From the NCBI GenBank assembly GCA_965202585.1, contig OZ241826.1, positions 15,500,001 to 15,564,000 of the forward strand: a stretch of DNA of 64,000 nucleotides. The letters run 5' to 3'. Position 1 is the first letter of the stretch; each line of letters opens with the position of its first letter. This stretch comes from Thalia democratica. Taxonomy: Eukaryota. The position numbers and the translations under genes were made by a program. Below the pieces are notes generated by a model. The model worked only from the letters and a program-made list of their open reading frames with translations, was not told the origin of the DNA and searched no databases. Shown here piece by piece: positions 37,651 to 61,500 of this stretch.

Positions 37651-40533
37651 TTTCCACAGTTTTGAATTTTATTTCGTGTTCGGAAAATTTTTGAACTTTG
37701 TTTGAATGTAAGTTTTGAAGTTTACTTTGAGTAAATATTTTTTATGGTTTTCGAAAACTTTTCTTTGGTAAATCATAACATACCTATTAAATGATAATAA
37801 TATTAAAAATACCAATACGAAAGTATCTTAACTTAAAATAAATAGTATAAAGTGTTTACTTAACTACAGTTATCAGCTAGTTTTAATTCCATTACAATAA
37901 AAAACAACGTAAAACAAATATTAAATCAAAAACAATGTTGTTCAACAAACTTAAATAAAATTTCATATGTTTTTTGCAAGTAACCATGATTGTATGTTTT
38001 TTTATAATAAATTACCAGGTATACATAAAAAAAAACGCTTAATTGCGTCTGAATTGAAAATGTGCTACATAAACATTAAAAGCCGCATAATCCTCGCTTA
38101 AAATTGCTACACACCGTTTAATAACATTAATGTCTTGTTAAATGAAATTACACAAATATTTTTCTGCTTAACATGACCTTACAAGCATTTTAAAACTGAA
38201 AATTTCGTTTCTAAACATTGTGGTTATACCGCCTAAAATGTTTTATTGGAATTGTTACAAAGTATACAGTAAAGTAGGCTTTTTTCATAAAATAAAAGTT
38301 TAACTACTAAGTGGACCACAAGTACATTATAAAGGCTATGTAAAACCTTGTAAGACAAACTTATAAAAAATGATATAATAAAAAGACATTCAAAAAGCAC
38401 TAGCTTAAAGACTAAAAAAAGCCTCATTGCTCTTAAGCTATTTTGCTTATAAAAACACTAATGTTAGAAAAAGTATTTAGACATAAATACAGTTTTAGAA
38501 AGTAAAAGGCTGTATGAGGTATTTTTTACAAAACTTGAAAAAGTGTATCAGACCATTTTAGTTTATAAGCTGCCAAGGTATATCAGTTCCAAACTTTTTC
38601 CAGGGAAAAATTAAATTTTTGCTCAAAAAGTCGATACCATTTTAAACCCGAAAAGTAAACCTCTTAAATTTATTTTTCACATATTTTAGTAAAAAAATAT
38701 TTTTAATTTTTCATACTTTTTTTGAGTGCATAAAGGTTCGAGTTCTTCAATAAATCCGACAAAAACAAAATAATTTTCACATATTATATTTTCATCAACA
38801 AAGCGAAAACATCCGACTCGGCGACCTCTGACCCACCTAACGGAGCTTTTCATCGAACAACGCGAATGTCGAACTTCGCGAATATCGATTATCAGATCGA
38901 TCTGCAACGTGAACTCTCTACACATCTTGTTTCGAAAATATTTTGTTGTTTGTCAGCGCTGACAGATTTACTTGTTGAGTTTTGTGAAAGCTTCGATTTG
39001 TTTTGGAATGTTTTAATTAAAAAATTATAGATTTTTTAGCAGTTCAAAGTTTTGCATCTATATGACATACTGTTTTTATGAATACTTCGTGAATAATTTT
39101 TTTTCTTTATAATATGTCTATAGTTTTAAGACTTTAACTTCTTTTATGTCTACTTTGGCCTTTTTTATAAGTACGGTTTCATTGAGAACTTTTATGATTT
39201 TGAAACACTTTTACAAAATTAGAAATTTTTTCTTAACTTATGGCTTTTTTTCAATTTGTATTTGAAATAAAGTTACATTTAAACTCTATATAACTTAACA
39301 ACAAGCTGTGTTAGTTTGTTCTATTTTACAACTTGTAAGAGAAATAATAAAAGTATCGTATTGTGTTTAATATATAAGTCTTCAACTACAACAAACTAAG
39401 TAAATTCAAAGCCTGTATATTGCCTACTGTAATATTTTTTTTTTAATTAATGTAGCTCATACAAATATCTCAGTATATCTAGCAACATCCGAAAACTACA
39501 TTCAAGTTTCATTTGTAGAGCAGCTAAAAGATTGTGCTTACAAGATATTGTTTTTTACTACAATTAAAAAAAAAGCTTTAAAAATAAGCACTGTTTTGGA
39601 CTATCTCTTCTTAATAAACTGTTTTAAACATATCTATTTTATCTATGTTAAGTCTTATTGGATTTTTAAATTAATTATTAGTTACCACTTAGATACATTT
39701 ATGATCAAACAAATTATTTTTACTTTTTATTGTAATAACTCTCTCTGGAAGGTAATTGTATAAAAACCACTTAAAATTTTGTGAAATTTTTAATTTATGA
39801 CATATGAAAACTTACTAGCGTGAAAAACTAGTTACATTTATCACAAGTCTTTTGTAACAACTAATATTTCATGTAACGAACAACAAAGATGATATTTAAA
39901 TCATGATAGTTAATATTGACAAAAGCTTATCATGAATTACATAATACTAGTATTTATTTTAACATACCATGTCTGTAAACTAGAAGTTTTATGCGTTAGT
40001 TTAAATTTTCAAGTCTCAAACTTTTTTTTTTTTAATTAAGTAGTTAATGACTTATGCAGTAAAAAATATTTTTGTTATTTTAATGGTATATTGACTGTAA
40101 CTTAAACTCAAAACTTAAGATATATTCAAGTTACTTTTAATGTAAGGCCTTGTATACAAATTATTTTTAGAAGTGTTAGATAACAATACTTACTTATACA
40201 AAAAACAAATTTTCTTAATTTATATGACATTTATTCCTTAACAAATACACAATTTGCGAACCCAGAAGTCAATTTAAACAATAAAAAGAAGAAATGAGAC
40301 ATTTAACAAAACACAAGGTAATTCGCAACAAAAAAAAATGGGGGAATTTTTTTACCTATACAACAAAATGGACTTTTCGCAAAACAACACACAGAAACAC
40401 GTAAGAAGAAAAAAAGTATAAAAAAGAAGCGAAAAGTTATGAAAGAATTATCTATAGAAGTTATGATGTATATTGTGACGTCACGCAAGGCCGAAGCCAA
40501 CCGTGTTGTTGTGACGTCATTATGACGTCATAG

Positions 40534-43500
40534 TTAAGCGAGGCCGAATCCAACCGTGCACTCGTTGATTGCTTGGAGGAGTTTCTCGCGAAGTTTGTCG
40601 TAAGTTTCGTACAACGGCAAGTCCAACTGGTTGAAACTGAAATAAAAAAATTGCTTATAAACAAATAAATTTGTTATAACTTATGCTAAGTAATTTTTAA
40701 GGATGCAAAGAAAATAAATCTTCAGTTGATTTATTTTCATCTCAAAGTTTTAGGATTTAAAAATGTTTAACATTTCAGATTAGTAAAACATGTGTAAAAA
40801 ACTTGAACTTACAAACAAGTATTTCATTTATAACTATTTTTGATTTTTAAATTAATATTTCAATTTAATCAAAAACATTTTAATTTCTAATGATAAACTA
40901 ACCAAGTATGGGCGCAAGGTAGCCGGTCAGTGGACCTGTTGTCCATTGAAATTTGGAATAACTGGACGCCCGTCATGCCTTCCAACCTCGAAAAACCGCC
41001 AATCGGCACTTTTGACGTTCCTGTGAGGAAAAACATTTAAATAAGAACAATAACTTGGTAAAATTTTTAAATTGCAAGTCATATTTTGTTTTCCACCAAT
41101 AGGGACCTTTTGATGTTCCTGTTTAAAATACAAGATTTAAATTAAAATGAACTTTTAATACCAATCTGTGAGTGGTAACAAAGTTCCTTTAAAAAACGTG
41201 GAGTTAAAATGTGGCACTCTTATGTATAATGGTGGTTTGAAAAATAAAATAGTTTTCAACTACAATATTTATTATAAAAAAATCAATTAATTTATATATT
41301 AAGTTGAAATTAAATCCAGTGAAAGTTAGGATTTATAAACTAAGTAATAAGAATTTAGTAAAGCTAATCATTAAACTTTTGTGTTAAGCAAAACAAGTGG
41401 TATCAATTCAGTTGAATATTTTTACAAACGAAGATAAAATTTTGTTTTTTTTTTGTGTTTTGAAGAATCTAATTTAAAATTTGTTTTGAAGAATAAAGAT
41501 AATTTTAAATGAAAACTTTAAATATCAAAGAAAACAGCTCATAACATTAGAAGAGTTTAGAAAATCTTTAGCAGAAATTTAAAATCTAACTACGCATAGA
41601 GCTAGATAAGAAAAAGTATGAATTATTAAATAGTTTCTTCACATTTCAAACTCAAGTAAAACATCTACTGCTTTTAACAGGTGATTTGCTTAGATGCATT
41701 TAAAAAAGATTATAATAATTCAACAATACTTGCTTAAATATTATTACTCGTATGATTTTACTAACAAGAAACTTTAAACTTGCAAAATATACAACCAACT
41801 AACAGATGTTTGAAAAATTTAGAAATTTGATTTTGTGCCAATTTAATTCAAAACTTTATATAATAAATATAACCTAGATTTTAATTGACAAATTGAATTT
41901 TTTTTAATAGACAAAGCTATTTTAGTAAGCATAAAACCTTAAAAAAGAAAGGAAATTTGTTGGAACATAAGTGATAATTCAAGTTTCAACGATAAAAATA
42001 CATAATAAATAACCAGTAGGAAAATAATGTGTAACAACTTAGAATAAAATATACTTATTTGCTCTTAATGATAACTAGTAACCAACTAGTAGCAAACTGA
42101 AGAAACTACATTAGTTAGAAAAGCAAGAGAATTGTGCAAAGTTTGACTTCTTAATTTAATTATTACTGAATTAAAATAAACACTCAATATAACCAACCAA
42201 TAGTATAAAGGAAACAAATAAGTAATTAATTTATTATAGGACTTAAGGGCAACAATAATTTTAATGTGAATCATAAAATTGAAACTTACGTTCTGGTTTA
42301 ATAGTTATTTGCCAACTAATAAAACAAAAGTCATTTTTCAATAAGTTTAAAACCAGCAAAAAATATTTATTTATTACAATCTAATCTAATATACCGACCA
42401 GTGGCAAATTGAAAGAATTTAGCTTTGGTAGCCTTGTAGAGACTTGAGAAAAAAATATTTTAAAACCACTAACATATAACAAAAAGTTTTATTCTTATTA
42501 TTCATTTATTCAACAAACAACCAACCGGTGGCAAATTGTAGGAACTTGGCTTTGGTGGCCTCGTCGAAGGACTTCAGGGCCCGCCAGAACCACTGCACCT
42601 GCTTGCTGGCCGTGGTGAACCTCGTGTAGGTCGTGTTCGCCTTCATGTCCGCCACGTCTATGGTGGGAAGTCCCGAGATCAAGAGCTCCAGTTCCTGCTC
42701 GTCGAACATCGAGATCAGCTTGAACGGGATCACCTGGTAGAAACCCTTCAGGAAGGCGCTGTTGAGAAAATGGAAATATTTAGTTTGTGTGGAGTCATGT
42801 TGTAATTTTTTTTGAACATTTTTATTATTTATTTATTATTTCAATATACGTAATGAATTTTAACACCATGGTTGGTAAATGAATGTTAAAAATGTGTTTA
42901 CATTTTGAAACAGTTTTATGTATTTGGTCTTTAAAATATTATAATCATAAACAGGTTTACAAGTTTCATTAGCAAGAACTTAAGCTTATCAGAAACTTAA
43001 ACCGAAAGAAGAATCAATTTCTACTTTTTTAACAGATTTTTTTTTATTTGCTTGTAAACAAACTGACACTCCATTATATGTCAAACACTGAACAACTATT
43101 TCTTAATAACTTATAAACTTTAAAGTAGCACAAAAAACAAACTTGATTTGGTCTTTAATGTTGACACACATTTTGTGCTTGCAGTACAGGTACACGTAAT
43201 GTTTCTTGTTTTCCTCTGTAACTTCAATTTCGTTTCCGCCCGGCTTCAACTCCTTGTTAACCGCCATTCCGAATTCACTTTCCTGTGTGACGTAACAGTT
43301 TTGTTATTATGACGTAAGAGTTAGATTAAATGTTAGGTATAACTCTAGCATGTAAAAATTTGTCATGTTGCTTGAGATTAAAACAAAGTTGGTTATTTAT
43401 GCATTTACACTATTTTTATGAACCTTTGAAAAAAATTGCATCACGACTAAAAAAGAGACAATTTCCACAATAACATTAAGAGACTTGGCTAAAAAAAAAA

Positions 43501-46500
43501 GTTAATTAACACAGGAGCGATTGCATATATAAGACAGCTCTAAGAAAGTTTCAAAACTATAGATCTGGATATAAATAAAAAAAGGTCTCAAAAACACTAA
43601 TTTCAAAAGAAAATGCGAGACGAATTTCAACACTTAAATAAAATTCAAAAAAACTTCAAAAAATAACAGTTGAAAAAAAAATTACTAACATCAACGGAGA
43701 ATGTGAGGTAGTTTTCAACAAAAAATAATAAACAAATTATTAGAAAAAATAACTAAAATAAAAATATAATCAAACTTACATCAACGGAGAACGTGAGGCA
43801 GTTTTCAACAAAAAATAATAAACAAATTATTAGAAAAAATAACTAAAATAAAAATATAATCAAACTTACATCAACGGAGAACGTGAGGCAGTTTTCAACG
43901 CCTATCTGCTTCAGCGATTGGTCGAGCATTGAGAGCAGGTGCCTGTAGCTGCCGGGTTCCTCGGACTCGTAGTCGTGGGAAGTGACCTGCTTGCCGAGTA
44001 TGTGCTTGTAGAAAGACCTGCAGAAGTAGCACGACATGTGCTTGTTGTCGAATATCGCCTTCGCCACCACACGACCTACGAACTGTTCGAATAATTAGTT
44101 TGTTAATTGTTTTATTAATATTAATAATTTTATTGTCGAATATCGCCTTCGCCACCACACGTCCTACGAACTGTTGAGTAAAAAATATCTTAATACATAT
44201 AAGACTTTCTTAGTTAGTATGATATAGAAAAAATATGCCATTTATGAATATAAAAACATCTACTTAAATTGTGAGATAAGAATTATTGCTCTTCCTAAGA
44301 ACTGTTCAAATAAAAAGGTTTTTATTAATAGTTTAGATTATTTATTATTCGTTTCTGAATATCGCCTATGTTACCCAGGAACTGTTGAATAAAGTAAATA
44401 ATTAAAATTTAGATGTTATAAAAAATATATTAACTAGAGTTAAAAACTAGAGCCTTTGTCAATAGACGAGCTTATTATTATGCCAAGACTTTGTTAATTA
44501 GTCAAAAATAAAAACATTTTAGTTAGAACATTACATATTTGGATGACAAAATTAGAATTGTGTATAAGCAACTTAAGATATAGTAAAAGGATATTTAGTA
44601 TGTTTTTACTTTCAATTGTAAAGAACATATTAGATTGAAAAAATACTTAAAAAGTTACAAGCCAATCACTTGTGCTTTATAGTTCCTGTTAATAAAGTTT
44701 TGGTAATCAAGAAACCGCTATCTCATCATATTACTGAGAAATATTGTTTGCATACAAACAATTGACTGCTTTGTTTTTGTAATAACCTAACTATTTTTAA
44801 TGATAAATAAATCCAGGTTTGAACGTTTAAGTTTTTTTACAAAACTACTTTGAATATGGTTTATAAATATTAGAATGGAATAGATTCAAGCGGACTTACA
44901 TAGTGTTAAATGAAGTAAACTGTAAAACATATTTCAAACATGAATTAAAGCAAATGTGCAAAATTTAAGATACATTCAGCTTGGCAAACAATTTATTCCA
45001 AATGCAAATACGCCAACGCATTAAGCCGATAATGCGATGTAATATTTCTAGCAATTGACCAAACACTTATCTCGTTATGTAACATTGAAAATTATCCACT
45101 ATAAGTATTTAAAACGTTGAAAACACCTAGATTAGCATCTTTCATTGATTAAAAAAAGATGATTCATCAAAAATTCAATGGCCCAGTATTTTAACTGATT
45201 AAATTAAATAATAAATTATTAGCATTTAAACTATTAGCATTAATCAAATGAACGGATATTCATTCACTAAAGGCACTTACAGCGTAAATAACACCTAGTA
45301 AAATCGGTTCAACGTATTTCATCAATTATTCGAAACAAAATGATTTATCAAAATTCAGTAACCCAGCGTTTTTTCTGATTGAATTAAAAAAACAAATGAC
45401 GTCTTAAAACAACGTTTCCACCGCTAAAGCGAAACTCAAGTCCGCACTGAGCTTTAATAATAATCATGATAGCATTTCTCGAGAAGCGTGCTTAATGTAA
45501 GTGAAAAAATTACTCAAGGAAAATAGAAAGTTGGGTATCCACTTGTGTTTGGGACTTGCGTACTCAAGTTTTGCGAAATTTTAAAGTGAGCAGTTTTAAG
45601 CGTTTTGTGTCAAAAATTTATTTTAAGAAAAACAACTGTTTACTGTGATGTTAACTTATCGGTAAAAGCTAATTTCAGGCAAACATTTAATTTGCACAAA
45701 TAAAAAACGTTAGAAAAAACAAATATTTGCCGTGTATTGCAATGTTTATTTTTTTTATGTTAAGTTTATCTAACGATTTTTTAAACTTGTGCTTTATTTG
45801 TTCATTTTCAGTTATTTAAACATAAATTATTTCAATTTGTTCAAATTACTGTAAATATTAATTTTTAACTGGAATGTAGATCAAACAAAATATAAGTTAT
45901 GATGTTATACTATACTATTTTAACTATATTACATAAAAAAAAGAATAATGTACTTTTTATTTAATACTCTACTACAGTTCGTTAATGGTTAATAAAACAA
46001 CTAAAACTTTTATTATTTAAAAACAAAATTATAATAATTAAAAGTGAAAATTCATACCAAGTATATCATTTACACTAATTAATTTTCATATCAAATTTTT
46101 GTACAAACTTTTAAATTTAAACTTATTATTTTTAAATATTAACCAATATTATTTATTCAACAACTTACTTCGAAATACTGCAAATGGGCGGGGTTTATTG
46201 TCGAAGTTGGGTTTATCGCGTAGCAACCGTGACCCTTGTACATGAACAAGCAGTAGTTCTGATTGAATATCTGCTCACTAATCACCTGACATAATTTGTA
46301 TTATTATTCTATGTTATTATATTTATATGATTTTTATTGTAATTTATGTATTATTATATTATGTGTTAATTAAATATTAATTGTATACTTAATAATTATG
46401 ATTGAATATCTGCTCACTTATGACCTACTAATGTATATGTATTACATTATTTATTTAACAAATTATTCAATATATATAGAACAATTTAACAGCTTTAATT

Positions 46501-49500
46501 GAATATCTGCTCAATGATAATGTATTGTATATTTATTATATTACAATTTTTTTATTTTTTTTCAATTAGGATAATTTTAATAATATTTACCTGATACCAC
46601 TCCCTCAAAACACCACCTGCGTCTTGACCGTCCTCATCCTTGAAAGTGACGTACAACCTGAAAAATAAAAAATATAATTATTAATTTAATTGAATGTACA
46701 ACCTGAAAAATTATAAAATTAATTATTAATTTAATTGTACGTACAACCTAAAAAATGATAAATATAATTATTAATTTAATTAAATTACAATCTGAAAAAT
46801 AATAAACATAATTATTAATTCATTGAATGTTACGTACAACCTGTTTTGATTAGTTGATAGTTAGTATGAGTTTATCATTAGTTATATATTATATATATTA
46901 CATATATTTTATATATAAAATTCTGACTTGGTAATTGGTAATAAAGGTTTTTAATGAGATTTGTAAGCTTACAACCTGTTTATAAATGATAACTATAACT
47001 ATTAAATAAAATGAATGCAACATATAACCTTTTTTGATTTGATTGTTAGCTAATTATATATCTATATTTGTTATAGTTTTTATATAATAAAATGTAAGGT
47101 TGGATTGGTTAATAACTGGTGTTTTTGTGACTATTTGAATGTCACAGCTAAAACTTGTTAATTGGTATAGTAGATTTTTGATTGGTCTTTTGGAAGTTTA
47201 GGAAGTTTTAAGTGGTTAATAATTATTTTTATCTGGTATTTAACTGTAGTTATAGTCTGATTTCTATTGATTAAATCATAAGGAGAAAATTTCAGTTGGC
47301 TAATTAGAAGTAGGAATAGTTTGTTTGTTTTTAATTTATCACATCACCTGTTTGAGTATTGACATTTTAAATGCCACGTATACTTTGGTTAAACATGGAT
47401 TTATTTATTAAGTGTCAGTTAGTAGATTAAGGTTTAGGTATTAAGATTAAGATTTAGGTAAAATAGTAGAAAAAAAACAAATATTATGATAAAATTGCAT
47501 CTTACTCATTAAATTTATAATTTACTTTAGCCTTAAAAGACCTCATGATCAAAACAAAACCTTAAAATGTCACATATAGTTGAAATTAAACTTATTTTTT
47601 ATAATTTTCAAAATTAACTTTTTACTTGACCTTTTCTTTTTGTGGGCAATTGTATAACAAAATATATTTTAATTAAAAAAGTTTATAATATAAATGTAGC
47701 AATTTTTGGCGCTAACTCAATAAGGAAGTGAAGAGATTATGACTAATTTAATTTCGTTTCTCAGAAAAAAAGATTAAACTCAATAAGTTTTGGTAGAAAC
47801 TGAGTTTAATAGTTCAAACTCAAAAAGTTTTATAGGAAAACAACTAAAACTTATTTGTTGTATTCCAATGCTTACAAACATTTTTTTATGAAGAACAAAA
47901 TAATTAAAAAGATTATACTTCAGTATAAATTTAAATGAAAAACTCCAGTAGACTGATTACAAACACTTCCGCTTTATATTCGTTTAATTAATATTATTAG
48001 ATTAAATAATGATTATTAAAATCTAGTAATTTATTACTTGTATGCTATAGCAATTTCTGTAATGACAATTTCCAAACATGATTTAATTTATTTCAACACT
48101 AGTTCTTCTGAGCAATAACTTAATCTTAACAAGATAAACGCTTCGAGGATATGAGGAAAAAAAATATTATCAAGACTTTATATCGTACTTACATTAAAAC
48201 TGCTACTTATATAGTTTTATTTGTACACAATTTTACGCTCACTATTTATCTAAAAATTCGCATAAAAAGCAAGTTCTTGACAAAATTCAATTTTATTTTT
48301 TGGTTACAAAAGTTGACGCGTAAGTAAATTCAGCTGTAATTGTAAATCTAACATATATATATTTTTAATTTAATTATTCAAAACCAAGCTTGCTCTGAGG
48401 TCGGTTTTACGTTTATACAAAAACTTCCAATTAGTATTATATTTGTTACGTAATTTTGAAAACTTAGTTCTTAAACCAGCACCGGAAGTCATAGAAAAAA
48501 AAGCGCTCATAAGCTAACAAAGCTTCAATCATAAACTTAACTTTGTCTAAAATAAAATAATAAACATATAATAAGAAGATATATAACATTAAAAAAAATA
48601 ATTATATAAGCATATATATTTAACTTAAAATTATTATGTTTATATCACGAAACAAAAATTCCAACCTTGCTCTGAGATCGGCACTAAAGCTTACAGTTGA
48701 AAAACTCAAGTAAAAACAACTTTAATACAAATATTAAAATTAACATTTTATTCCTAATTATCATATTATCTTTAATAAACCAACCTAGCCCTGAGATCGG
48801 CGCCGGACTTCTTCTGGAACTCCCTGAACGAGTCCTCGAACAAATTTTTCCTGCTCACCTTCAGCTGCAGGTCGTCCCTGCTCCTTGAGCTTCCTGAAGT
48901 CTCGCTCAGCTTGTCCAGCTGCTGCCGGAAGTGCTTCCGCTTCACGTCGAAGTCCAGGACGCGCGTGTGCGTTGCCAGGACGCTGAAGGGGCCCGTTGCC
49001 AGGGGGACGGTGGACTGGCGCAGGATCTGGTTGAGGACGGTGCGGTGGCGATCGGCGAACCTGCGGAAGTTTGTTTGTGAAAAAGGAGAAAGGGAAGAAC
49101 AAAGGAGAAATTTCTTTGTAGAGAGAAAATAGTACAAGTAGTAATTAATAATAAAAATTAATAATAATCTATTAATGTTAATAAATAAAAAAAAATTATA
49201 AAAATAAAAATAATAGTTCAAGTACAGAACCTATTAATGATGTGTCTCTAATTGTATCTTGCACCCAAACATCAACAGCTGACACAAATTGTTTTTATTG
49301 TTTTGTACCAAAAAGGAGTTGGAAATTTTTTATTATTAAGTTTCAAGTTGAAATAAAATTGATGAACTTAACCCCATAAAAAAAACCTACTTTTTACATG
49401 TTTTTTTTTCTAACTGCAGATAAAAGCGATAAAATGCAAACAAACTCCACAAAAAAACAACTAGGTAAACTGAAACTACTAAATTTTGGATCAAATATTA

Positions 49501-52500
49501 ACATACTCATTAATTTTATTATCATCAAATACAGTCGACACTTACTTGAGGAACTCTTTCTCGTTCTTGGGCATCTTGTCGTCTATCAGACTCGATTCGG
49601 ACTTCTTCGCGTCGAGGTCTTCAAAGAAGTGCTCGAAGTCGTCCCTGGTGAACATTTATTATTATGAAATAAGTAGTTTATTATTATTTATTATTGTATT
49701 CAATGATCGTTCATTAATTAAAAATCAAGTTTTTTATTACCTGGTACTCTCTTATTTATCGCTTAACAAATAATATCAGATAATATCTATTAGGACGTTA
49801 TTTGTTTGAAACTAAATCAAACAATCATTTTTAACTTTTTATTTTTTTTATTCATTATAGTTTAATTATTTTTTAAATGTTTTTATTACCTGGTGAGCCT
49901 CTTCATGACTTCCTCATTCTCGTTCCTGCTCGTGGACGCGTCCTCCTGATCGGGTTGGTCCTGCTTGATGTCGAAGGAGTGGACGAGGAAGAACGCCTCC
50001 ACTGCGGGCTGTTCAAGTGAGGAGAAAGGTTAAGTTAGGGGATATTAGTGGGTGGAACTCATGTTGTTACTATATATTTTAGAGAATTAATATTTATCAT
50101 GGTAGAGTTATATTATAAAGTTAATGATTGGTATATGGGATTTTCTCTACCATACTAACAAAAATTAAAAAAAAGGAATGAAAAAAAACTGTCTTAAACG
50201 AATGTTTTAAGGGGTTTGTTGAAAAGTTACTTAGAGGAAATCTTAACTGCGGGCTGTAAAGTGGAAAGATGTTGGTGAGGTAAGTGTATGCTCTAAGTGT
50301 TGTTTTTTAGAAAATCGCTTTTTAAAACTTTTTAAGGGAATCTTAATTTATCAAGATGTTAATGGTGAATAAACCGTAGACAAGTTTTTAAATAACTTGG
50401 TGTGAATTAGAAAAAAAATCTTTTACTGTTGAAAACATTTTTCCTAAGGTTAAAAACAGACTTAACCAAATAAGTATTATATTAATTCAGGATTGAACAA
50501 CATAAATGATATTACTTGTAATACAAGCACTGCGTGTTCGTCTCCACTTTTTTCCAATTCTTTCAAACAATCACCGAGGACTTTCCACAAGCTCTCAAGT
50601 TGCAATTTCTCTGCTAGTGTGGCTGTTTGCAAACATAAATAAACATTAATAACTTATTTTGTTAGTTATTTTATATTGACAGAATATAAGAAAAAAATAC
50701 TATCATTAATATTTTTTTACCATAAAAGATTAAATACCAACCAAATATCAAAATCAAATTTTAATATGTTTAGATTATATGTTGAACGAAAACCGTATCT
50801 TACAAATAAGAATTCAAGGAATGCAAATTAATTCTTATATTTATAATTTACTTACATAATTACAATATTTTTTAATCAGTTCACCAACCTTGCGTTTCCT
50901 CCGGTTTGTTTTCAGTTGTAGTACCCTGACCGCTTGTCGAAGCTTCATTGTTCCTGCTACTGCCACCCCTGTTTGAACCCTGCGACCTCTGCTGGTGCCT
51001 GGTGACCCACGAGGGGAGGGGGTAGGCGGCGTTGAGAGCGTCCATGTCCAATAAAGAGTCCCCGTCGAACAAACCGAACTGGGTGTTGGGGTGCTCTGCA
51101 ACGGCTTGGGTGTACAAAACTTGCGGTTTAATTGTTTGTTTTATTTACAAAAACGAGTTTAGTTATTTTTGCGTTCATGTTTCAAATATTGTCTTTCTCT
51201 GGATAATTGTATATTAAAAAAACCAGTGGGAGAAAGAGAGTCCTCAAAATTTTAAGTTTAATCAAAACCTGAAGCTGAACTCAAATCGATTTAAAACAAA
51301 CGAAGTTAGGTGTAAGAAAATTTTTCACTTGAAGTGCAAAACTTAATTTCAGCCTTTAAAACTGACTTTAAGCAAGGTTTAAGACCACTTACTGACTTTA
51401 GTCTGTGAGGAGGAGCTTGTTTAACTTAACAAAAAATAAAATAAACATACGTCTACGCCATCTTCTAATCTGGCTCCTGACTTGATTGGAGTTGGGAACG
51501 AAATTGAAGTACTGATGTTTGCCTGATGTTTGCAGTTGCAATATAACCTTCAGTATTCTCAAGAAGAACGCCTGTTGAGTTCATGTAACGTTTATTTATT
51601 TTACAAGCTAGTAGAGTATTAGAGTTTTTTTTTACTGACTAGGACTTATTTAACTTATGCTTACATCAAAATCCATTACTTAAAAACTACAAATTAAACG
51701 AAACAGTATGTTTCTCTTGTTAAAACTACAAATATTAATTTTAAAGCTGTACTAAAAATATTACCAATTGTAATTTTACCTGTCTGCTGGTTTTGCAGGT
51801 AAGGGGTTGCATGCTTGGAAGTTGAAGGTCTCTCGCCAATTTGTCGTCTTTCTTCAGCACCAACTTCTTATCTTTGTCGAACCTGTTTGCATATTTTGTT
51901 TTTATTACATTTAAGTATATTGAAGTTTATTAACTTATAATTTTTCTTCAACACCAACTTTTTATCTTTGTTGAACCTGCATGTATGTTGATAATAATTT
52001 TTGTTTTTAAATACAAGGTTGTATGAAAAAGTTGAAAACTTAAATTTGGTTGGAGTTTGATTGTAACAGCCGTTTTAAAAAAACTAAACGAAATTTAAAC
52101 ATACTTGAGTAAAAAATGTCGAGTTAACTTTCAAGTTAATACAAAATCATAAAAAAATTAAAACTTTACTTTAATGTAATTGTTAACAAAATGTCACAAT
52201 TAGAATGACACGTATACAAAGCATGACTAACATTAAAACAACTGGTTCAACTGTAAAAATCGTGCTATAAACTGCCAGCTTTAGCAACATTTCTATTGAC
52301 GTATTTTTGCTCAATAATGTTGCAATAACTTTTAATTGATTGATCAGTTTCTTAGAACTTTTAAGTTCACTTGACTTGCTTAACTTTTAAAACATTAAAT
52401 ACCCTAAATAACCACCTTTTTTAAAAATATAAACTTTACTGGTAGCGTCAGGCAATTAAATTTTAACAATAATTATTTGTACATTTATGAAACAAAAATT

Positions 52501-55500
52501 TTGTAAGAATGTATTTAACTCTCTTTTTTCTACATACATTTCCAAGAGCTTCACAATTAAAATAAACAGCTATTTCTGTTTTCTCTATTTCTATCTTAAA
52601 CTATACTTATATGCTAATTTGTGCTGAAGTAGTAACGTAAAACAATTATTTCTAAAAATACATTTGTTCTGCTTACTGAAGAAATTACTCGGAATATTCA
52701 AAATTACGGAATATTTTACGTTCAAGTCTAGTACAGACAATTACATCTAAATATAACTGTTCAACGTAGAAAAGTAAACTATAATTTTAAAACTCGCAAA
52801 ATAATCGTACTGCACTTTAAATAGATACATTAATACATAATTTGCAATATAAAAAACCTGCTGATAATTTCTCCCAGCAAAACAGTTTTGTCAAAATCAC
52901 GGAATACTTTACATACAAGTACGACAAAGGCAAGTATTTATAAAAATAAATGAAACATTAAAATAGATAAGTTACAATAAATACCTGCTGGTGAATTCTC
53001 CCTGATTTGAGCTGGTAGACGGCGAATCAACGTTTGATTTTTTGTTTTTGTTGTATTCTTTTATTTCCCTGTACAGCCCACTTATTTGTTCTGCTAACCT
53101 GACTCCCAGGGTTTTGCCACCTAAATAATTATGAGGTTTAAAAAATGTTCTACCATATAAAGTTTGATAAGTTTAATAATTAAAGCCTAATTTTTTTGGT
53201 TAACAAGAATCTTAAGCTTAACTATTTCAAAACGAACGTATTGAAAATAGACCTTGATTAACAAATTACCTAAAGATCATAAAGCATTAAACAGTAAATT
53301 CAAGAGAAGTCATTTAAAGTTTTAAAAATTTAAGTATTAGAATATCACTAGAAAATAATTATGAAAATGTTGCCAAAGACATATCTTTTTAAATTTCCAA
53401 AAAATACGAACCGTCAACAAGTAGTGAAACAATGACTGATCTCAGCGGGTCAGCTGATTTTGACAATTGTAGAAGAAGTTGGGTGGCATCCTCAAGACCA
53501 TCTTCGCTGCAACTGTGTGAAGTCAGCACTTCGATGCACACGCCTGAGATTTATATTATCAATTTTAATTCAATTATTAGAATAACTCAAAAATATTATT
53601 TGTATTTTTATTCATTTCAAGCTTTACATTAAACGCACTTGATTTAGAGAAAAGTTTTTATACCAATATTAAATTTATTCCATTAAGAATGCACTGAATG
53701 AACTTTGAAGTTAATATCTAAAAACTTCAAAACTTTAGTTCGCTTTTCATTTAGCTTAAAAACAAAAAGTAACAATGAGATAAAACAGATCACACGCACC
53801 TAGCTCGTCCTTCAAGCACTCTTCCTTCTTCGGGGTGTTTTCCCCTTGATGAGAACTGGATATGAGGGACTTGGAACTGGTGGTGGTGCTGGTTTCAGTC
53901 GCGGTGTTTCCCCTCGTGTCCGTCTGCGTGTTGGACGTCGAGGCCTGCGCCGACATGGTCCTCGTCGTCATGGTCCTCACGGGCGGTTGCTGGGGAGCGG
54001 GGGTCGGTTGCGTGGCAACGGGGGGTTGCTGCTGGGAGGTGGAGGCTTCCTCGCTAGGGGGAGTTGTTGCTTGGGGCGGGGTGACTGTTCGGGCCAATGT
54101 GCTCCTGAAGTGATAGAAACTAATAAAATGTATAAAAATTTAAATTAATAATAATTAATTTTATATTAATATACAGTATTATTAAGCATATGATATTTTC
54201 AATTGTGAAAGGTCAGTTTAATTTTAGTTTATTATAAATGCATTTAAAACCTCAGTAAATCAAGTTTAAATAATATAAATTTCTTTTTGAAGTTCATACG
54301 TAACCAGCTTTAAGTTTTACGTATAAGCTAAACTATTTCATTTTTTCAAGTTAAAAATTTTATATAATACCAACAATAATAGAAAACGTTACATTTTACT
54401 TTAACATAATAAGTTACTATGGATATCTAGTAACACTTTAAATATTCAAAACAAGAAAACAATTTTAAGCTGAAAGTAATATAAATAAAATAGAGTGAAA
54501 CTAACTTTGGTGGAGCCTTGATGTTTTTGGAGATGTTGCTCAACAATTTCAGCATCCTGTCAGTTAATTGCTGGTTCTTTTTAACAACAGGATGGCTCAA
54601 TTGCTTTAAGAGGAACGACAACCAAGATGTTTGAAGTTGACCAGCGTCCTGTGAAGTATTATTGATAAGATAAACAACATTTCAAGACATTATGCTATTT
54701 TTATTCCCGTGAAAGATAAATAAATATTTGTAGTTTAATAACGTTTTAGATTAACTTGTTACTTCATACACTTGTGTTTTTAACGTACGCATAGTTTAAT
54801 TGTTAAAAATTACAATTAAGACAATTCAACAAAATTTAAATTTAAAAAAATAGTGTAACTGTATCAACGTACTTTGCTTGAACTATTTTTGGTACAAATT
54901 GCGAAGCTGCATTAGTCGAAAAGAAATAAAAGCTTAAAAACCGACAAAACTTGAAAACCCATACCTTGATAACAACGGGTCCAGTGGTGGGTCTGTTCTC
55001 CTGATCAATGGTTGCCGTGTGCGCTCTCGAGGTGGCGGTGATCTTCTTCTTGGTTGAAGAGGAAGTGTCCAATTTCATCAGAATGTCCCAGAAATCCGAA
55101 GACACTTCCGCGTCTGTATAACAGAATTGTAATGTTCATAAATAGCACTTACATCAAACGTGCTTAGTTTAAAATCAAACACACTATTCTTTTACAAGTT
55201 TGAAAAATAATTATAATAAATTGTCTGTTTGGTAAGCATTTTGGCAATCTAAAATCTACTTTAAATTATTAATTTTCAGACATTTACGCACTATTTGATT
55301 TAAAACTTAAAATATTTCAACAAAAGTTATCACTGTGTCGTAATACTTGTAAGGAGCAGACAAAAACTTGTACTTTTTTAGTAATAAATTGGAAGTAATG
55401 TGAACAATAAGTCAATAATAAAATTTTATAATGAAAGCCATATGTCTAATGTGCACTACATCAAATATTTACTCAACTGTGTAACAGTCCATTGTATAAA

Positions 55501-58500
55501 TTTTACTTTAGCAACTTTTGTTTGTTTATGCATAAGAAATTTATTTTACATTTGCAAAAAAGTGGGCTTCACCTAAATGTAACGTTTTATAAAAATGTTT
55601 GCTCAAGTTTGAAAAGCCAAATTTTATTGAATTGAACAAAATAAACATTGCTATTATGTTTTAAAGAATAAAATTTACTGTAAAAATATATTATAGAGCT
55701 TCAACAAACTTTTATAGCTCTTTAATCTTATGAAAACTAAAATGATTATAATGGTTTCTGATAAATTTTTAGACTGGTAATATGGAAGTATGGGAAAAAA
55801 TGACTTGGAGTTTGAAACAATATTCACATACTTTAAGTTCCTTGTTAAATATTTGGCAATATATTCAATATAATATTAATATAAATTTTTTATAACTTGA
55901 TTAAAGAAATAGTCTTTTTTTTTCAACTGACAATTAAAAATAAACAACCCACCATTGAGTTCCTTGCTCTTATATACTTAACTTATACAACATTTTTCAG
56001 CTTCTAAATGTTTTGTTAAACTGCTCACTTATTTTAAGTTCTCAATATATATTTAAAACACAAGATAACAAACGCACCATTCAACTCCTTGCTCTTCTTG
56101 TTGGTGCTGGCAACCAGTTGCTGGGGCTGAACGAAATCGGCGGGGAACACTTTGCTGAGCATGTTCAAGCAGTCGATGGCGTGCCTGGCCACCAGCGGCG
56201 CCGCTTGCGGGTGGATGAACAGCTTCTTCACCAACCTCTGCGACGAAGACTTCTTGTTCGAAGATTGCGATGGCACCTTCGCTACCTGAGTTGGAAGTTT
56301 TTAGTTTTATCAGTTGGAAAAATTTATGCTCTATTTAGCCTGTACACATTTCATGTTTAAACATAATATAAATTGTGTTAAGCAAATAACTATTTGGTTC
56401 TTAAAGTTAAGTTAAATAAAAGTGCATTATTGTCTAAATACAAAGTAATAACTTCTTCTTATTTGTGCATCTAAAAATAATATTAAAGACTTGTTTTAAC
56501 AAAATATAGACTTATATAAATTTATAAAGAGGTTATAACATTAAATATTTTTTTCAACAAACTTGGAAAATGGAAGCCCTGGCACCCAAAGCGCCGTCCA
56601 GCTTGATCGACATCCAACTGGAGGTGGCGTACTTGACGGTGGTTGCTTCCTGCTTCTTAGCCGGTTGCTTGGCAACCTTGGTGTCCCCGGAACGTTGCAG
56701 GATGGATACCAAAGTGGATACCAGCCAATCGCGGGTGGCCGAGTGGTAACATACGTTCCTGAACACTTTGTGGAGAACCTGTTGGAAAATTAACTTGTTG
56801 AAAGGTAGACATATAAGAATATTATCTATGACTTTTTATATAAGTTATTAATTGAATCTTTTGGATATGATTAAATACTTTGAACGAAGTTTCATTTGCT
56901 TTTCAACTTCAAAAAGCCCACTTAAACTAATTTAAACGTGACTTAAGGTAAAAAAAAAAGCATGTCCATTTTTTTATTAAAATGGATTAATTTTCAAAGT
57001 CTTTACAGAATTACTTCTAACTTTTTTATGGCTGTTACTTTAAGCATTGAGAATATTAAGGTACAAAACAACCGACCTGAACGTTCAACTTGGAGTCTTC
57101 TTGCACGAACAGCAGCAGCAGCAGGTGGGACAGCGACTCGTGATCGAGGACCTGCCTGGACTGGAACGTCTTGTCCCCATTTCCGGCCTGCGCGCCCTGG
57201 CTCCCCTGGTGGTACCTGAGCGCCCTCCTGCGGCCGCCCGCAACGCCGAAGTCGACCAGCATGCCGCCTCTGTCGCGGTATCTGTGGTCAATTTCTGCGT
57301 ACCTTCTGGCGCATACAAAAAAGTGGGTTTAGTTTGGTCGGATGTTGCTTGGTTTTTGAGTTTTTTATGTTTTTTTTAATGAAATAATAAACAACTAGTT
57401 TTGTTTATTTGAATTGAATAGTGGATAAAATCAAGAAAATTTTGATGTTTTAGAGATGCATACAAAAAGTGGGTTTGGTCGTCGGATGTTGCTTAGTTTT
57501 TAAAGAACTTAATGGTGATTTTGAGATACTTGAGATAAATTGTTAAACAGATTTTTTTTTTAATTCCCTTTTTGTTTTAATTTGATGGAGAAAATCAAGA
57601 AAATTTCGATTGATACAATCAAAAACTAAACAATTTTGTAAATTATCAAACTTATGTATTAAGCAATGCGCGGTATCTGTCGTAAGTTTCTGCGTGCCTT
57701 CTAGTGGAAGCGTACAAAAAATACGGGTTTAGTCGTTGGTAGGATGATGTTTAGTTTTAGAGTTTTTCTTTGCTTTTTTTTTAAATTAAATAATAAATAA
57801 CTAGTTTTGTTTATTTGAAATCAGCGGATAAAATCTAGAAAATTTCGATATTTTTGTCTTTGCCAAGTATAACGAACTTGATTTAGTTAAAAAGTAACCA
57901 CACTTGTAAACGGAAGTCCCAAACAAAAATAAGTATATCTTAATAATATTACGTCATAACACCAACCTCTGCAAATGTTCGGTGACGTTCCTGTGCTGCT
58001 CCATCTGCCTTCTCTCGTTCTCCGCCCTCAGAGACCTCGCTTCTTCCTGGAGAGCTTGCGGCAGTTGGGCGATCTCTGAATCTTCCATCTCACCTGGTTA
58101 ACATTGTTATGATTATTATGAGGTCATTTCACATAGAAAAAATAAATTTTTAGGCTTACAGTCCTTCTGTGACCATTGCTTTGAACGTGAATAATTTGAA
58201 TTAGCTATGTATCTATATTTAATTACATATGCACTTATGTTATTATTAGTGTACTTCCACTAAAATCTTATGTATTATTATTAGCTACGTCATAGTTTAG
58301 AAGTTTTTTGTGACCATTGTCAGCTAAAAATAGTTTGTAAATGCATTCCTTATCGGAAATTCTGTGATATAAGCATGTTCTAATGTATTTCCACTATCTA
58401 TTTTTATTTTGTGTTAAGTATTGTTATGTATTTCCACTAAAATCTTATGAATGTATTTATCTTAAAAAAGTTATGCACTATAATCTTATTACATATGTAT

Positions 58501-61500
58501 TATGTATCATAAGTGTTAATTATGACTTATACCAACCTTAAAGTATATACTTATCTAAAAAAATTATGCACCTGTATTTAATTGATACGTACTTATTATT
58601 ATTTATACCAACCTAGCAACTGCCTCCTCAAATCAGGTTCAAGTTGGTGGATGAAGGAGGAATTGTCCGCTGAAGGTTGCGTCGCTTGATTGAATGCTGC
58701 GCGTTGCTCTTCGTGCTGCGAATTATCAGTTTAAAATAAAACACAACATTTTTTACTGTTATTATAATTAGATGAGGAATACAAGAAGTGTTTGAATCAA
58801 AATGGTCATATAATCAAGTAGTTTTAAAAATCATAAAAATCACAATACAAGTTGTTCTTTCTACTAAAAAAAGATGAGCTTAAATCATCTTTTTCAAGTT
58901 TTATATTAAATAAAGACAGTTTTATAGTTAAATCAGATTTTAAATCTCATTGATAATATAAAAGACTTGAATCATACAACTTGACTTCAATAAAATTTTA
59001 ATTTCAAACAAAGTACTACCAACCCTCCTCTGCTGATCAATGACTTCTTGTTGGATGTTCTGAGGGAGGGCGTTCAAGAATTCAGGGTTCAATCTGGTGC
59101 TGAGAACGTTCGCTTGCCCGCTACCAGATTCTGCGTTTCTGTTCAGTGTGTCCCTGTGGAAAGAAAATTAAACTGTTAGTGTTCAAAAAATATAAGTATA
59201 GATGTGTGAAGATAATGATGTTATGCTTTCTAATAATATTATTTTTAAGCTTAACGTACTAAAAAGCTCAAAATTTGCAAAAAAAAAAAAAAAATCAAGT
59301 AAAAAAGATAATGATAAGTTTCATAATAGTGTTTACTTTTTAAGGTAATGTTAATCGATTTAAAGTCAGTATTCAATAGATATTAGTATAGATTTGTGGA
59401 GAAAATGATGTTATGTAAAATTTGTATGTAATAATCTAACATATGCAACACCTACTACTCTTGCATTTAGTTAAAAAAATTCAAAATGCTTCTTATATTT
59501 TTTTTGTTAACAAAAGGTTTCAAAATTTGCAAAAAAAAAAGATGACAGTTAAACTTGTAATAGTTTTTACTTTCTATGACAATATTAATCAATGTAAAAT
59601 CAGTGAAACAAAATATCTGTGTCGTAACAAACTTTCAATTATTCAAAAATCAACAAAATATACCTGATAATTTCAGCTCTGACGTCTTGGGGTACTGCGA
59701 TGAGAAATTGGGGGTCGACGTTGTTCCACACAGTAGGACCGTCGTCTACCTGATTTGCTTGCTGTTGATTGGACGGTTGATCAGATGCTGCTTGTTGATT
59801 GGTTGCTGCATCTGATGCAGGTGGCTCTGTAAAGAATCGTGATTTAATGTATAATGTATATCATTTGTTTTTTTTTAACTAGTATATTCTTTTTGGTTTA
59901 CACTGAAATAAACTCCCGGAATGAATAATTACTTATTTTTTAAATCTTTTTTTTTTCGTTCTAACAAGTTATGTCTACATTTTTCATTTATTTTAAGGTA
60001 TTACATTTACCTTACTCAAATAAAAATTAATTATTTCAAAACTTTTTTGGATTCTAGGCATTATCTTATATGCACAGGCAATTAATACTTTAATTAATTT
60101 TTTTTATAACTATTATTAGAAAAACACCATTTCACAAACCTTGTTGCTGAGATGGGGCGGTGGTAGTTTGGGGTTCCTGGGTAACCGTGTTTGATGGTTG
60201 CCCTGGTAACTCGGCGGATGAATCCCCCGTGTCCATGGGTTGAGCGTCAGTCACATCCCTATCAACATCTGTTTGATAAATATTAAAGTTTAATATTTTG
60301 TTTTGGGTGTTTTTTTAATAAAATATATTTAAACTTACTTTACACAACTCAGCCCTTTGGCGAATAGGGCCGCAACAAAATTAGGCTTTCAGTTGAAGAA
60401 GTTTTATTCATTATTTTCAGTTTTAGTTTTATATTTAAGTTTATATCTAATAAAAAATACTTGTTTTATCTCGAACTAACATTTGTGCTTAAACATGTTT
60501 CTTAGTGACAAATACAAAAAAATATGTACTTAAAAAAGATAAACTTAATTTCTAAAGAAGTTTTCTTATGATGATGGACTAAAATTTCTATTTATTATTT
60601 ACAAAACACAACAAAAAAAAGGAAATTTTATTTTCAATAGAAGCTTTCTTACACAGATGAGAAGATTAGGGTTTATATATATGAGAAAAAAAAATATAAA
60701 GCTTTAATTTCAACAGAAGCTTTTAGACGGGGAGATTAAAGTTTTGATTCATTTTACCAAATACAACAAAAAGATGTTAATTTTCAACACAAGCTTATAA
60801 AGGGGGAGATCAAAAGCTGTATGTATAATACTTAGACAACAAGCATAAAGAATAAAATTATTTAAACAGAAGCTTACAGACTGGGAACGTTTTCATTTAT
60901 TATTTTAACAAATGCATATATAAAGTTTAACTTCAACAGATGAGGAGATTATCGTTCGACACAAAAGCAAACATGTTGCATCAGGAAAAGCAAACATCAA
61001 AAAAAAATCCAGCGAGCAAAACCGTGCGGAAAAAGAGTGAGAAATTGCGTCACACAAAATGAGAGCGAGAGATGTTGGAACGAAAGTTTTGAACTTGGGA
61101 TGCGAGAGAGGGCTTTCATAAGAGCTCTCTCTCTCGTTTATTTGTTTGCACAGAACATCAAGTGATAGGAAGTGCTGAAGTTACAAACGGTGCTGACACA
61201 GTCTGTACAGAGGTCAGTACAGTAGATCAGTTGAAATTTGATATGATTTGCACTGAAAAGTCGCTTTTTCTTCATATTTTTGTTCAAACTAGTAGGTGAA
61301 ACAGCAAGAAATTAACAATTCAGAAAGAAAACTCATCAATGTAGGAGGTGCTAGCCCAGCATGGGAGGTAGAAAACAATATAGTCTAATTGTTTTTATTA
61401 TTAATTGACTATATTACCTTCTACCTCACTTGCTAGGCTGCTTTATTTTAATGATGAGTGCAAATAATTGAGAAAGTAAGGTAAAAGTAAGAAGAAAACT

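Follow-up and report, generated by a model that had tools for sequence, protein, structure and literature searches.

The window, a 64,000-nucleotide stretch of Thalia democratica DNA, has a G+C content of 27% and carries on its minus strand the 3' part of HUWE1, whose upstream part extends past position 60290, beyond the window. The gene was traced from open frames with high third-position G+C and by tblastn with two full-length homologues called HUWE1 by their sources (P0005 and P0040). Its stop codon lies at 40536-40534, the last exon ending in TVGFGLA, and in the weakly conserved parts we placed the exon ends ourselves, guided by open frames, splice motifs and tblastn. Short copies of exon ends, together with their splice signals, recur in the adjacent noncoding DNA, and the features are as follows.

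40534-60290, minus strand: 3' part of HUWE1, about 27 exons.
40481-40505, minus strand: stop-codon copy (last 7 codons plus stop) in the 3' UTR, 53 nt downstream, strong at 40485-40505; all four changes are silent, TAA to TGA among them.
41093-41122, minus strand: acceptor copy of exon start 41020, offset 98, AG retained; five silent changes, no replacement, one inserted base.
42393-42440, minus strand: donor copy of exon end 42526, offset 127, 39/48 identity, GT retained (GTCGGT).
43600-43899, minus strand: donor array of exon end 43870 in units of about 90 nt, each with 30 nt of exon end, GT and 60 nt of intron (direct-repeat search and TRF); the strong copies are 43684-43719 and 43768-43809, the latter identical to the live junction at 42/42 positions.
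44130-44400, minus strand: acceptor array of exon start 44082, offsets 88, about 209 and about 298; strong copies 44130-44175 and 44294-44313.
46393-46523, minus strand: two acceptor copies of exon start 46285 (46393-46426 and 46498-46513), offsets 139 and 236, occupying most of a 305-nt intron.
46649-46843, minus strand: acceptor array of exon start 46657 with four 45-nt units (36 nt of intron end, CAG and 9 nt of exon) and an older copy in which the exon part is 24 nt (direct-repeat search and TRF); the strong stretch is 46696-46843.
48661-48682 and 48381-48404, minus strand: two donor copies of exon end 48785, both reading AGA GCA where the exon reads AGG GCT (direct-repeat search).
49731-49745, minus strand: short donor copy of exon end 49890, 15/15 identical (5 nt of exon, 10 nt of intron).
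50246-50257, minus strand: weak acceptor copy of exon start 50008, 12/12 identical, offset 245.
51943-51979, minus strand: acceptor copy of exon start 51882, offset 94, core 34/37, overall 58 nt at 79% identity (direct-repeat search).
52852-52875, minus strand: donor copy of exon end 52986, offset 127, 20/24 identity.
55946-55971, minus strand: donor copy of exon end 56078, offset 125; GAG to GAA and TTG to CTC, both silent.
57669-57854, minus strand: acceptor copy of exon start 57305 (core 57669-57702), offset 395, found as a blastn self-hit against 57274-57451; it lies in a duplicated segment of about 190 nt, some 155 nt of it intron, at 80% identity.
58527-58538, minus strand: weak donor copy of exon end 58613, 12/12 identical, almost all on the intron side.

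These copies were quantified by Smith-Waterman alignment of every exon end, taken as 12 nt of intron and at most 60 nt of exon, with the adjacent intron. At a score of at least 14, an exon-end copy with its AG or GT was found in the adjacent intron at 13 of the 53 HUWE1 junction sides, and lowering the threshold to 12 added three weaker copies (16/53). The initial annotation, which had reported such copies at 14 junctions and the stop codon, called for a comparison with control introns; run within HUWE1, it gave no score of at least 14 with the same intron reverse-complemented (0/53), with the intron on the wrong side (0/52) or with a nonadjacent intron (0/53). Exon-interior pieces of HUWE1 gave no match of at least 14 by the same alignment. 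The copies are real, polar and far above chance. Two of them, 58527-58538 and 50246-50257, are weak, the score of 12 at the latter being barely above the control maxima. Direct-repeat search, blastn self-hits and TRF recovered the HUWE1 repeats independently.

The copies fall into seven families at acceptors and eight at donors, with the stop-codon copy in addition, always on the intron side of the junction and 45 to 396 nt from it. The direct repeats span the exon end and the adjoining intron end, head to tail beside the live junction (the 90-nt, 45-nt, 88-nt and ~190-nt cases), and five junctions carry arrays with a spacing of 45 to about 90 nt. In young or large copies the unit takes in intron sequence as well. 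TRF reports a period of 90 with 2.4 copies at 97% for 43684-43899, where the 90-nt unit is 97 to 98% identical, and a period of 45 with 4.0 copies for 46651-46830; both junctions of exon 44082-43870 share a spacing of 88 to 90 nt (88 nt at 44042/44130). Identity to the exon drops with distance, from 100 to 92 and 67% in the copies that follow the live unit at the 43870 junction and from 88 to 75% at the 46285 junction. In the four introns measured, copies make up 10 to 85% of the intron length. By our own reading, AG or GT is retained in about 19 of 22 copies, in agreement with the earlier statement that most keep it, and it is lost in the oldest ones (43602, 46521 and 48389).

Similar structures occur in other genes of this genome. 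Another HECT gene holds arrays of 86-nt units (18 copies) and 65-nt units (13 copies), and a myosin gene holds a 248-nt unit in two copies. One array (L036) has a higher-order period of 336 nt with variants shared among units, and the L055 donor copy is identical to the exon at 21/21 positions. The frequency of copies is uneven among genes, with copies at 3 of 94 junction sides of validated myosin exons and at 3 of 55 of validated HECT exons.

The initial annotation knew of no description of such copies as a system. However, tandem duplications of exon-intron boundaries have been named mirages in amphioxus (PMC3087553, PMC3902484), where they were reported from Adh3, the globins BflGb6 and BflGb9, troponin C, PGBD5, retinol dehydrogenase and presenilin; Canestro et al. 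2002 is among the sources cited for them in PMC3087553. Amphioxus mirages affect 5' and 3' boundaries, have units of 10 to 160 bp with AG or GT in most, evolve in concert within clusters and leave splicing undisturbed, and their mechanism was termed unclear by the describing papers (PMC3087553, PMC3902484). The HUWE1 copies resemble them in a unit that spans the exon-intron boundary, in affecting acceptors and donors, in the AG or GT of most units, in their place in the intron beside the live junction and possibly in concerted evolution, to which the 336-nt period and shared variants of the L036 array and the 44130-44175 copy with its unalignable flanks would point; mirages likewise form arrays of two to six or more units that are 81 to 100% identical, and unit sizes overlap (45 to 400 nt in Thalia democratica). 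The Thalia HUWE1 structures belong to the known mirage kind. They differ in density, which is far above that reported for amphioxus mirages, with a quarter of the HUWE1 junction sides affected and 13- and 18-unit arrays in the other HECT gene. Moreover, neither PMC3087553 nor PMC3902484 describes young amphioxus copies as diverging mainly at silent sites. Splicing neutrality and length instability have been demonstrated for amphioxus mirages. The genomic setting also differs, since the window has far less G+C than lancelet genomes, at about 41%.

Two other systems are related in part. The human F7 intron 7 minisatellite is a 37-bp VNTR that begins with an element spanning the exon 7 donor, the most upstream donor site being the one used (PMC1557585). 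Like the HUWE1 donor copies, it starts at a live donor and fills the intron with serial pseudo-donor sites, but it concerns one locus of a genome in which arrays of this sort are rare, with no acceptor-side counterpart and no codon-structured divergence described. In the Rogers model, introns are gained when a stretch inside an exon that contains AGGT is duplicated in tandem (PMC2891723, PMC4974935). There too a local tandem duplication makes extra splice signals inside a gene. In that model the piece that doubles is internal to an exon, and the intron gained stretches between the GT of one copy and the AG of the following copy; the HUWE1 duplications cross junctions that were already there and do no more than make present introns longer. 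Rogers-type gain was rejected for the HUWE1 copies, which lie in existing introns and include an existing junction, with none from exon interiors. In a recursive splice site, which serves the stepwise removal of an intron, an intronic AG stands immediately before a GT-type donor. The motif of CAG followed by GTTGTA is found in each unit of the 46649-46843 array only, because the exon itself begins with GT.

The sequence of the copies holds a further, quantitative property. In the nearest copies, 25 codons differ silently from the exon and 6 by replacement (25:10 when the 57305 copy, whose frame is ambiguous, is assigned the frame of the conserved block downstream), a recount that bears out the roughly 26:6 first counted by hand. 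The accompanying premise that a neutral copy gains mostly replacement changes was too simple: because changes on the exon side are all silent and decay is fastest at third positions rich in G+C, the expected silent share rises from 27% to 41-48% in a codon-level simulation of a neutral copy and a silently evolving exon. Even so, the coding-like parts of the nearest copies differ mainly by silent changes, in excess of this null (P <= 0.0015), and the second-to-fourth copies (9 silent, 13 replacement) are consistent with it. The changes are directional, with G/C in the exon and A/T in the copy at 29 third positions against 4 of the reverse, and 35 against 11 overall.

We consider it fairly probable that the copies are mirages, local tandem duplications spanning the exon-intron boundary, and that their young members exchange with the live exon edges. 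The sequence itself shows the arrays and their polarity, the fall of identity with distance and the silent excess; how the segments duplicate, why splicing tolerates them and what keeps young copies clean are inferences. A segment of 45 to 400 nt including the junction would duplicate head to tail, perhaps by replication slippage or unequal exchange, and the duplications have often grown into minisatellite-like arrays. Only the exon-contiguous copy yields a correct mRNA, and the others are therefore stranded, upstream for acceptors and downstream for donors. A stranded copy is without its opposite splice site, for which reason the splicing machinery presumably ignores it, and it would drift toward intron-like A+T-rich sequence, lengthening the intron. 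The youngest, exon-proximal copies may keep exchanging with the live exon edges by gene conversion or unequal crossing-over, with the sister chromatid and probably with the homologue too. Such exchange would keep replacement sites clean in young copies, leaving mostly silent variants as differences from the exon, and once it ended the copies would decay neutrally. The contrast between the nearest copies and the older ones points to exchange, as does the 44130-44175 copy, which is 44/46 identical to the exon edge (96%, with three silent changes) and whose flanks do not align above the level of unrelated intron pieces (0.62; the 95th percentile of the null is also 0.62).

The stronger claim, that young copies trade sequence with the live edges on the sister chromatid or homologue often enough to imprint protein-level selection or allelic silent variation on the intron, is tentative and rather doubtful. 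Against the exchange explanation in general, simple bidirectional conversion with selection on the live copy only would not by itself predict a silent excess, by our own rate argument; exchange needs to run between homologues in a very polymorphic species, or to be joined by selection against exon-converting copies. Furthermore, part of the silent excess could reflect exons gaining third-position G+C rather than exchange, because the third-position differences are directional. The uneven frequency of copies between genes is not accounted for by the mirage and exchange explanation.

Allele capture, proposed in the initial annotation, would have each copy born from the divergent other haplotype, so that the silent differences were allelic at birth. 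Inter-homologue repair or crossing-over would begin in exon homology and stop at the intron, and end-joining would leave the exon edge of the homologue next to the resident edge. A constrained path of two to four times the neutral path would accommodate the silent excess of the nearest copies, and homology breaks off abruptly, immediately beyond the exon-like part of 44130-44175 and past the 43684-43719 copy. Unplaced contigs that duplicate chromosome loci with slightly different protein scores (C965 against C4) suggest appreciable heterozygosity; amphioxus, the only other known mirage host, is among the most polymorphic animals. We nevertheless regard both this origin and its route as unlikely, and as the whole story allele capture fails on three counts. 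Two functional alleles should differ symmetrically, not 29 to 4. The youngest copies (43768-43809 and the L055 donor copy) are identical to the exon, and therefore birth from the same haplotype occurs. Finally, the point estimate needs an allelic silent divergence of about 0.1-0.25, to our knowledge at or above the highest values known. In addition, no second HUWE1 copy was found in the assembly. Splice-site turnover, the other origin suggested initially, is geometrically possible, although through unequal exchange only, because only an exon-contiguous copy gives a correct mRNA.

Copies that are dead on arrival and decay neutrally would owe their silent bias to silent evolution of the exon, to faster G/C to A/T decay at G+C-rich third positions and possibly to a drive of exon third positions toward G+C. 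The older copies match this null, and so does the direction of the changes. In the 18-unit array, variation follows G/C content and codon position is not significant once stratified; once G/C is allowed for, third positions in the long arrays of the other HECT gene show only a marginal excess (Mantel-Haenszel P = 0.056), and L036 taken alone shows none that is significant. The third-position ratio, 3.2 after adjustment for composition, has 1.7 as its lower 95% bound, near the null ceiling of 1.7-2. Against decay alone, the nearest copies depart from the simulated null even under extreme G/C mutability (at equal rates, P = 0.0015 or less; when the exon evolves at twice the rate, P = 0.004 to 0.05), and the excess is present in every base class, in and outside CpG. 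Rare silent changes at first or second positions also occur (TTG to CTC, CTG to TTG, TAA to TGA), and in one copy, where 9 replacement-site bases are G or C, five silent changes stand against no replacement. The silent excess of the youngest copies is not explained by simple decay, which we hold improbable as the only process.

It is very improbable that the copies are functional elements maintained by selection to tune HUWE1 splicing, whether as decoy or auxiliary splice sites or as steps in recursive splicing. The retained AG or GT, and the CAG followed by GT in each unit of the 46649-46843 array, the form of a recursive splice site, would suit such a role, but retention is expected of young copies anyway and the oldest copies have lost the signal. 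Moreover, a three-base periodicity is not something a splicing signal would impose, splicing at a copied site would add 45 to 400 nt with stop codons, and in amphioxus mRNAs are unaltered by mirages (PMC3087553, PMC3902484). Collapsed or stuttered haplotypes in the assembly are scarcely credible as the source: 43768-43809 is identical to the live junction, array copy numbers come from the assembly only and one amphioxus mirage was mis-assembled in a draft genome (PMC3087553), but most copies are 67 to 95% identical with substitutions and indels of their own, which assemblers do not invent, arrays have higher-order periodicity (336 nt in L036), like structures recur in other genes and chromosomes, and two read sets, probably from the source sample and so not independent, contain 83 to 94% of the 31-mers of the region.

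Mirages have so far been reported from a handful of lancelet genes only, and they are now found densely in a second, very probably unrelated animal with a chromosome-level assembly. Their origin, their clustering in some genes and the intron length they create thereby become answerable genome-wide, as does the question of whether they seed new introns or micro-exons; they were proposed as raw material for intron gains in the amphioxus globin paper (PMC3087553). Since the copies combine intact splice signals with codon-like sequence, gene predictors will be misled in this genome. Should the predominance of silent differences in the youngest copies hold across the genome, it would be a new property; protein selection or allelic diversity would then be legible in the noncoding neighbors of exons, and ectopic conversion would be measurable. 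If the exchange reading is true, mirage arrays would preserve a readable record of past or alternative exon codon states, would measure short-range gene conversion directly and would be a chief driver of intron growth in hyper-polymorphic marine animals.

The sequence of the window (G000:C1:15500001-15564000; 27% G+C, no gaps), part of an 802-Mb assembly, includes the 3'-terminal third of HUWE1, encoded on the minus strand, which was recognized from open frames with G+C-rich third positions and from tblastn with two full-length homologues, P0005 and P0040. Splice junctions were assigned by combining open frames, homology across the junction, and splice motifs; confidence in the calls is high across the HECT part (40.5-49 kb) and lower at 50-58 kb, and exon ends in weakly conserved parts are our own calls. 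The HUWE1 protein sequence of this genome is divergent, and none of the homologues returned by protein searches with length limits and 50%-identity clustering is nearer than about 60% identity. Searches of sequencing runs matched none recorded as RNA; one run, X4, contains 14-21% of the sequence words and may represent transcript contigs. Many donors (e.g., 58613, 57967, 59024, 50889, 48785, and 42526) read GTTGGT after an exonic G, or GTTAGT, instead of GTAAGT; judged from these sites, the typical intron start here may depart from the common animal consensus. Features of the gene in the window include the following.

40536-40534, minus strand: stop codon of the last HUWE1 exon, which ends in ...TVGFGLA; the gene extends up past 60290
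61358-61434, minus strand: let-7-like hairpin (Rfam let-7) in a HUWE1 intron, on the strand of the gene
61768-61863, minus strand: let-7-like hairpin, as the preceding one
61945-62013, minus strand: let-7-like hairpin, as the preceding ones

The hairpins score 41.8, 26.1, and 33.3 bits, all below the Rfam gathering score of 53.5, and one of them contains TGAGGTAGTAGGTTAA at 61857-61842. Human let-7f-2 and miR-98 likewise lie inside a HUWE1 intron, and the arrangement may represent ancient synteny.

The initial annotation had reported short copies of exon ends, together with their GT or AG, in the noncoding DNA flanking HUWE1 junctions, and these were borne out. At every HUWE1 junction side, the exon end, taken as at most 60 exonic nt with 12 intronic nt, was aligned against the adjacent intron; 13 of 53 sides scored at least 14 and 16 of 53 at least 12. 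No side reached 14 against the reverse-complemented intron (0/53), the opposite-side intron (0/52), or a nonadjacent intron (0/53), and the same alignments revealed no copies of exon interiors. Short direct repeats with an exon end as one member were found alike by a repeat search, blastn self-comparison, and Tandem Repeats Finder. The positions originally listed are strong for all except two, 58527-58538 and 50246-50257, which are simply 12-nt exact matches. Copies lie 45-396 nt from the live junction and their polarity is strict, acceptor copies being invariably upstream and donor copies invariably downstream. A further copy, lying 53 nt into the 3' UTR, duplicates the stop codon together with the seven codons before it. 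Three occurrences of a CRE-type palindrome, TGACGTCA, directly follow the HUWE1 stop codon (40470-40535); the third begins with TGA, which serves the 3' UTR copy as its stop codon.

Five HUWE1 junctions have more than one copy. The arrays and duplications on the minus strand include the following.

Donor array after 43870: three extra units at about 90-nt spacing, each with 30 nt of exon end, GT, and 60 nt of intron
Acceptor array before 44082: three units at offsets of 88, about 209, and about 298 nt
Acceptor array before 46657: four repeats of a 45-nt unit that contains a pyrimidine tract, CAG, and 9 nt of exon
Acceptor copy of 57305: within a duplicated segment of about 190 nt, of which about 155 nt are intron (blastn self-comparison)

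Relative to the live unit, identities in the 43870 array are 100, 92, and 67%, and the 46657 array has an additional, older copy with 24 nt of exon. Identity to the exon drops as distance from it grows. In the four introns measured, recognizable copies fill 10, 15, 46, and 85% of the intron. Because they form arrays of regular units with intron sequence inside the duplicated segment, the copies are very probably tandem duplications of junction-spanning segments. The strict polarity needs no further assumption, since correct splicing is possible only for the copy joined to the exon body. Relics of whole duplicated exons were rejected as a source, given arrays of 13-18 partial units and strictly edge-only content.

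The initial annotation knew of no description of such structures, and in this it was mistaken: tandem duplications spanning exon-intron boundaries have been described as mirages in amphioxus globin genes, with a mechanism called "unclear" (PMC3087553), and two further lancelet cases appear in a study of PGBD5 (PMC3902484). They were first reported for Adh3 and are present in further lancelet genes; either exon boundary may take part, units measure 10-160 bp, AG or GT occurs in many units but not all, length varies between haplotypes, clusters evolve in concert, and the mRNA is unaffected (PMC3087553). A single human analogue is the minisatellite in F7 intron 7 (PMC1557585). In our literature search, mirage reports were confined to cephalochordates, and neither a genome-wide census nor any reference to codon-structured divergence turned up. 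The HUWE1 copies are of the same structural kind as the amphioxus mirages, a known kind whose records had been limited to lancelets and to few genes. Lancelet genomes have about 41% G+C, compared with 27% in the window; mainly this difference, together with the divergent HUWE1 sequence, makes a lancelet host very unlikely, and the let-7-like hairpins point to a bilaterian.

Beyond the window, 61 loci of about 3.2 kb each were sampled. In myosin genes with homology-validated exons, copies scoring at least 16 occur at 3 of 94 junction sides, against 1 in the reverse-complement control; a myosin gene has a 248-nt unit present twice at a donor, plus an acceptor copy at an offset of 360 nt. Other HECT genes have a copy at 3 of 55 sides, against 0 in the control, and all three belong to one gene on contig 2, which has two acceptor arrays.

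G000:C2:2635023-2638271 (locus L036), HECT-ligase gene: acceptor array in which an 86-nt unit occurs 18 times
G000:C2:2640611-2643937 (locus L055), same gene: another acceptor array, with a 65-nt unit repeated about 13 times

The L036 unit comprises 33 nt of intron end, AG, and 49 nt of exon, with a higher-order period of 336 nt, and the array makes up at least 1.5 kb of one intron; in the L055 array, two spacer types alternate. Junction copies are thus genome-wide yet strongly clustered by gene. Elsewhere in the genome, intronless protein-kinase genes number in the dozens and form tandem clusters (contig 8 at about 12.3-17.8 and 53.5-53.8 Mb; contig 6 at about 13.4-13.7 and 67.5-68.0 Mb), with open frames of 320-470 aa and full-length Pkinase matches. 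Genes of chromosomes C4, C1, C5, and C8 recur, at slightly different protein scores, on small unplaced contigs (C965, C598, C792, and C981). These contigs probably represent second haplotypes kept in the assembly; if so, haplotype divergence could be estimated from them directly.

Over all HUWE1 copies, differences from the exon fall at codon positions 1, 2, and 3 in the numbers 14, 7, and 38, and the exon has G/C where the copy has A/T 35 times, against 11 for the reverse. Two trivial effects have to be allowed for in these counts: a true exon adds silent changes only, and G/C bases, concentrated at third positions, change fastest. After base-class stratification, the ratio of third to other positions is 3.2 (bootstrap 95% interval from 1.7), against a ceiling of 1.7-2 for a neutral copy plus a silently evolving exon. 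CpG or base-specific mutability was rejected as the source of the excess, which stays at about 2.6- to 3-fold whichever class (C, G, CpG, or non-CpG) is considered.

The nearest copies, those closest to the live exon, show 25 silent against 6 replacement codons (small numbers, from about 100 codons), or 25:10 if the frame-ambiguous 57305 copy takes the frame of the conserved downstream block, so the mainly silent divergence reported initially holds for them. The accompanying premise, that a neutrally decaying copy gains mostly replacement changes, is correct for the copy alone (27% silent in a codon-level simulation) but ignored the two trivial effects; an exon evolving silently at an equal rate raises the expectation to 41-48%, ten-fold G/C mutability included, and the nearest copies still exceed it (P <= 0.0015). 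The simulation fits the nearest copies only with a constrained path about 2-4 times the neutral path. Second to fourth copies, at 9:13 silent to replacement, are consistent with the simple null.

Individual copies illustrate the pattern. At 41093-41122, the copy carries five silent changes and one frame-breaking inserted base and is unchanged at 18 replacement positions; the four changes in the 3' UTR copy are all silent, TAA to TGA among them; and leucine-preserving changes include TTG to CTC and CTG to TTG. In the 18-unit L036 array, variants common to several units comprise nine silent changes and one conservative replacement, and singletons two silent and eight replacement. The codon-position effect in this array is only marginal once stratified by G/C content. 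For L055, the comparison of replacement sites with intron-like columns (P = 0.007) is not reliable, as these columns are partly misaligned by the alternating spacers. The four differences between 57274-57305 and 57669-57700 are all replacements in the frame entering a conserved 16-residue block and all silent in the +1 frame (GGT/GGC, TTG/CTT, ACC/ACG); on this reading of the frames, the true exon structure between 57305 and 57155 may differ from the model used.

The coding-like part of young copies has diverged from the exon mostly under protein-level constraint, though it is untranslatable. Tentatively, we attribute the silent excess to continued exchange, in which young copies would keep trading sequence with live exon edges. 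Exchange of some kind is favored by the 44130-44175 copy, 96% identical to the exon edge with flanks as dissimilar as unrelated intron (intron-side identity is noisy, with a null mean of 0.40 and SD of 0.16, and is used qualitatively). Three explanations remain. The one proposed initially, by template switching or gene conversion, is that the exon-like part of a copy had until recently been a live exon edge on a different chromosome, transferred by unequal exchange or aborted repair between homologues; taken alone, it demands high allelic divergence and sits poorly with the existence of young copies identical to the exon and with third-position differences that are directional (29:4). That directionality favors a faster-than-neutral gain of third-position G+C by exons, for which the polarizable cases give a mixed picture. 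Copy-exon exchange could also be so frequent that replacement-bearing copies are selected against, which requires a very large population. A single exon lineage budding off snapshot copies is rejected because silent change in the exon cannot outpace the decay of the copies, and two-way conversion with selection on the exon alone falls to a rate argument, as it predicts equal silent and replacement divergence. In HUWE1, the bias of young copies toward silent divergence is real.
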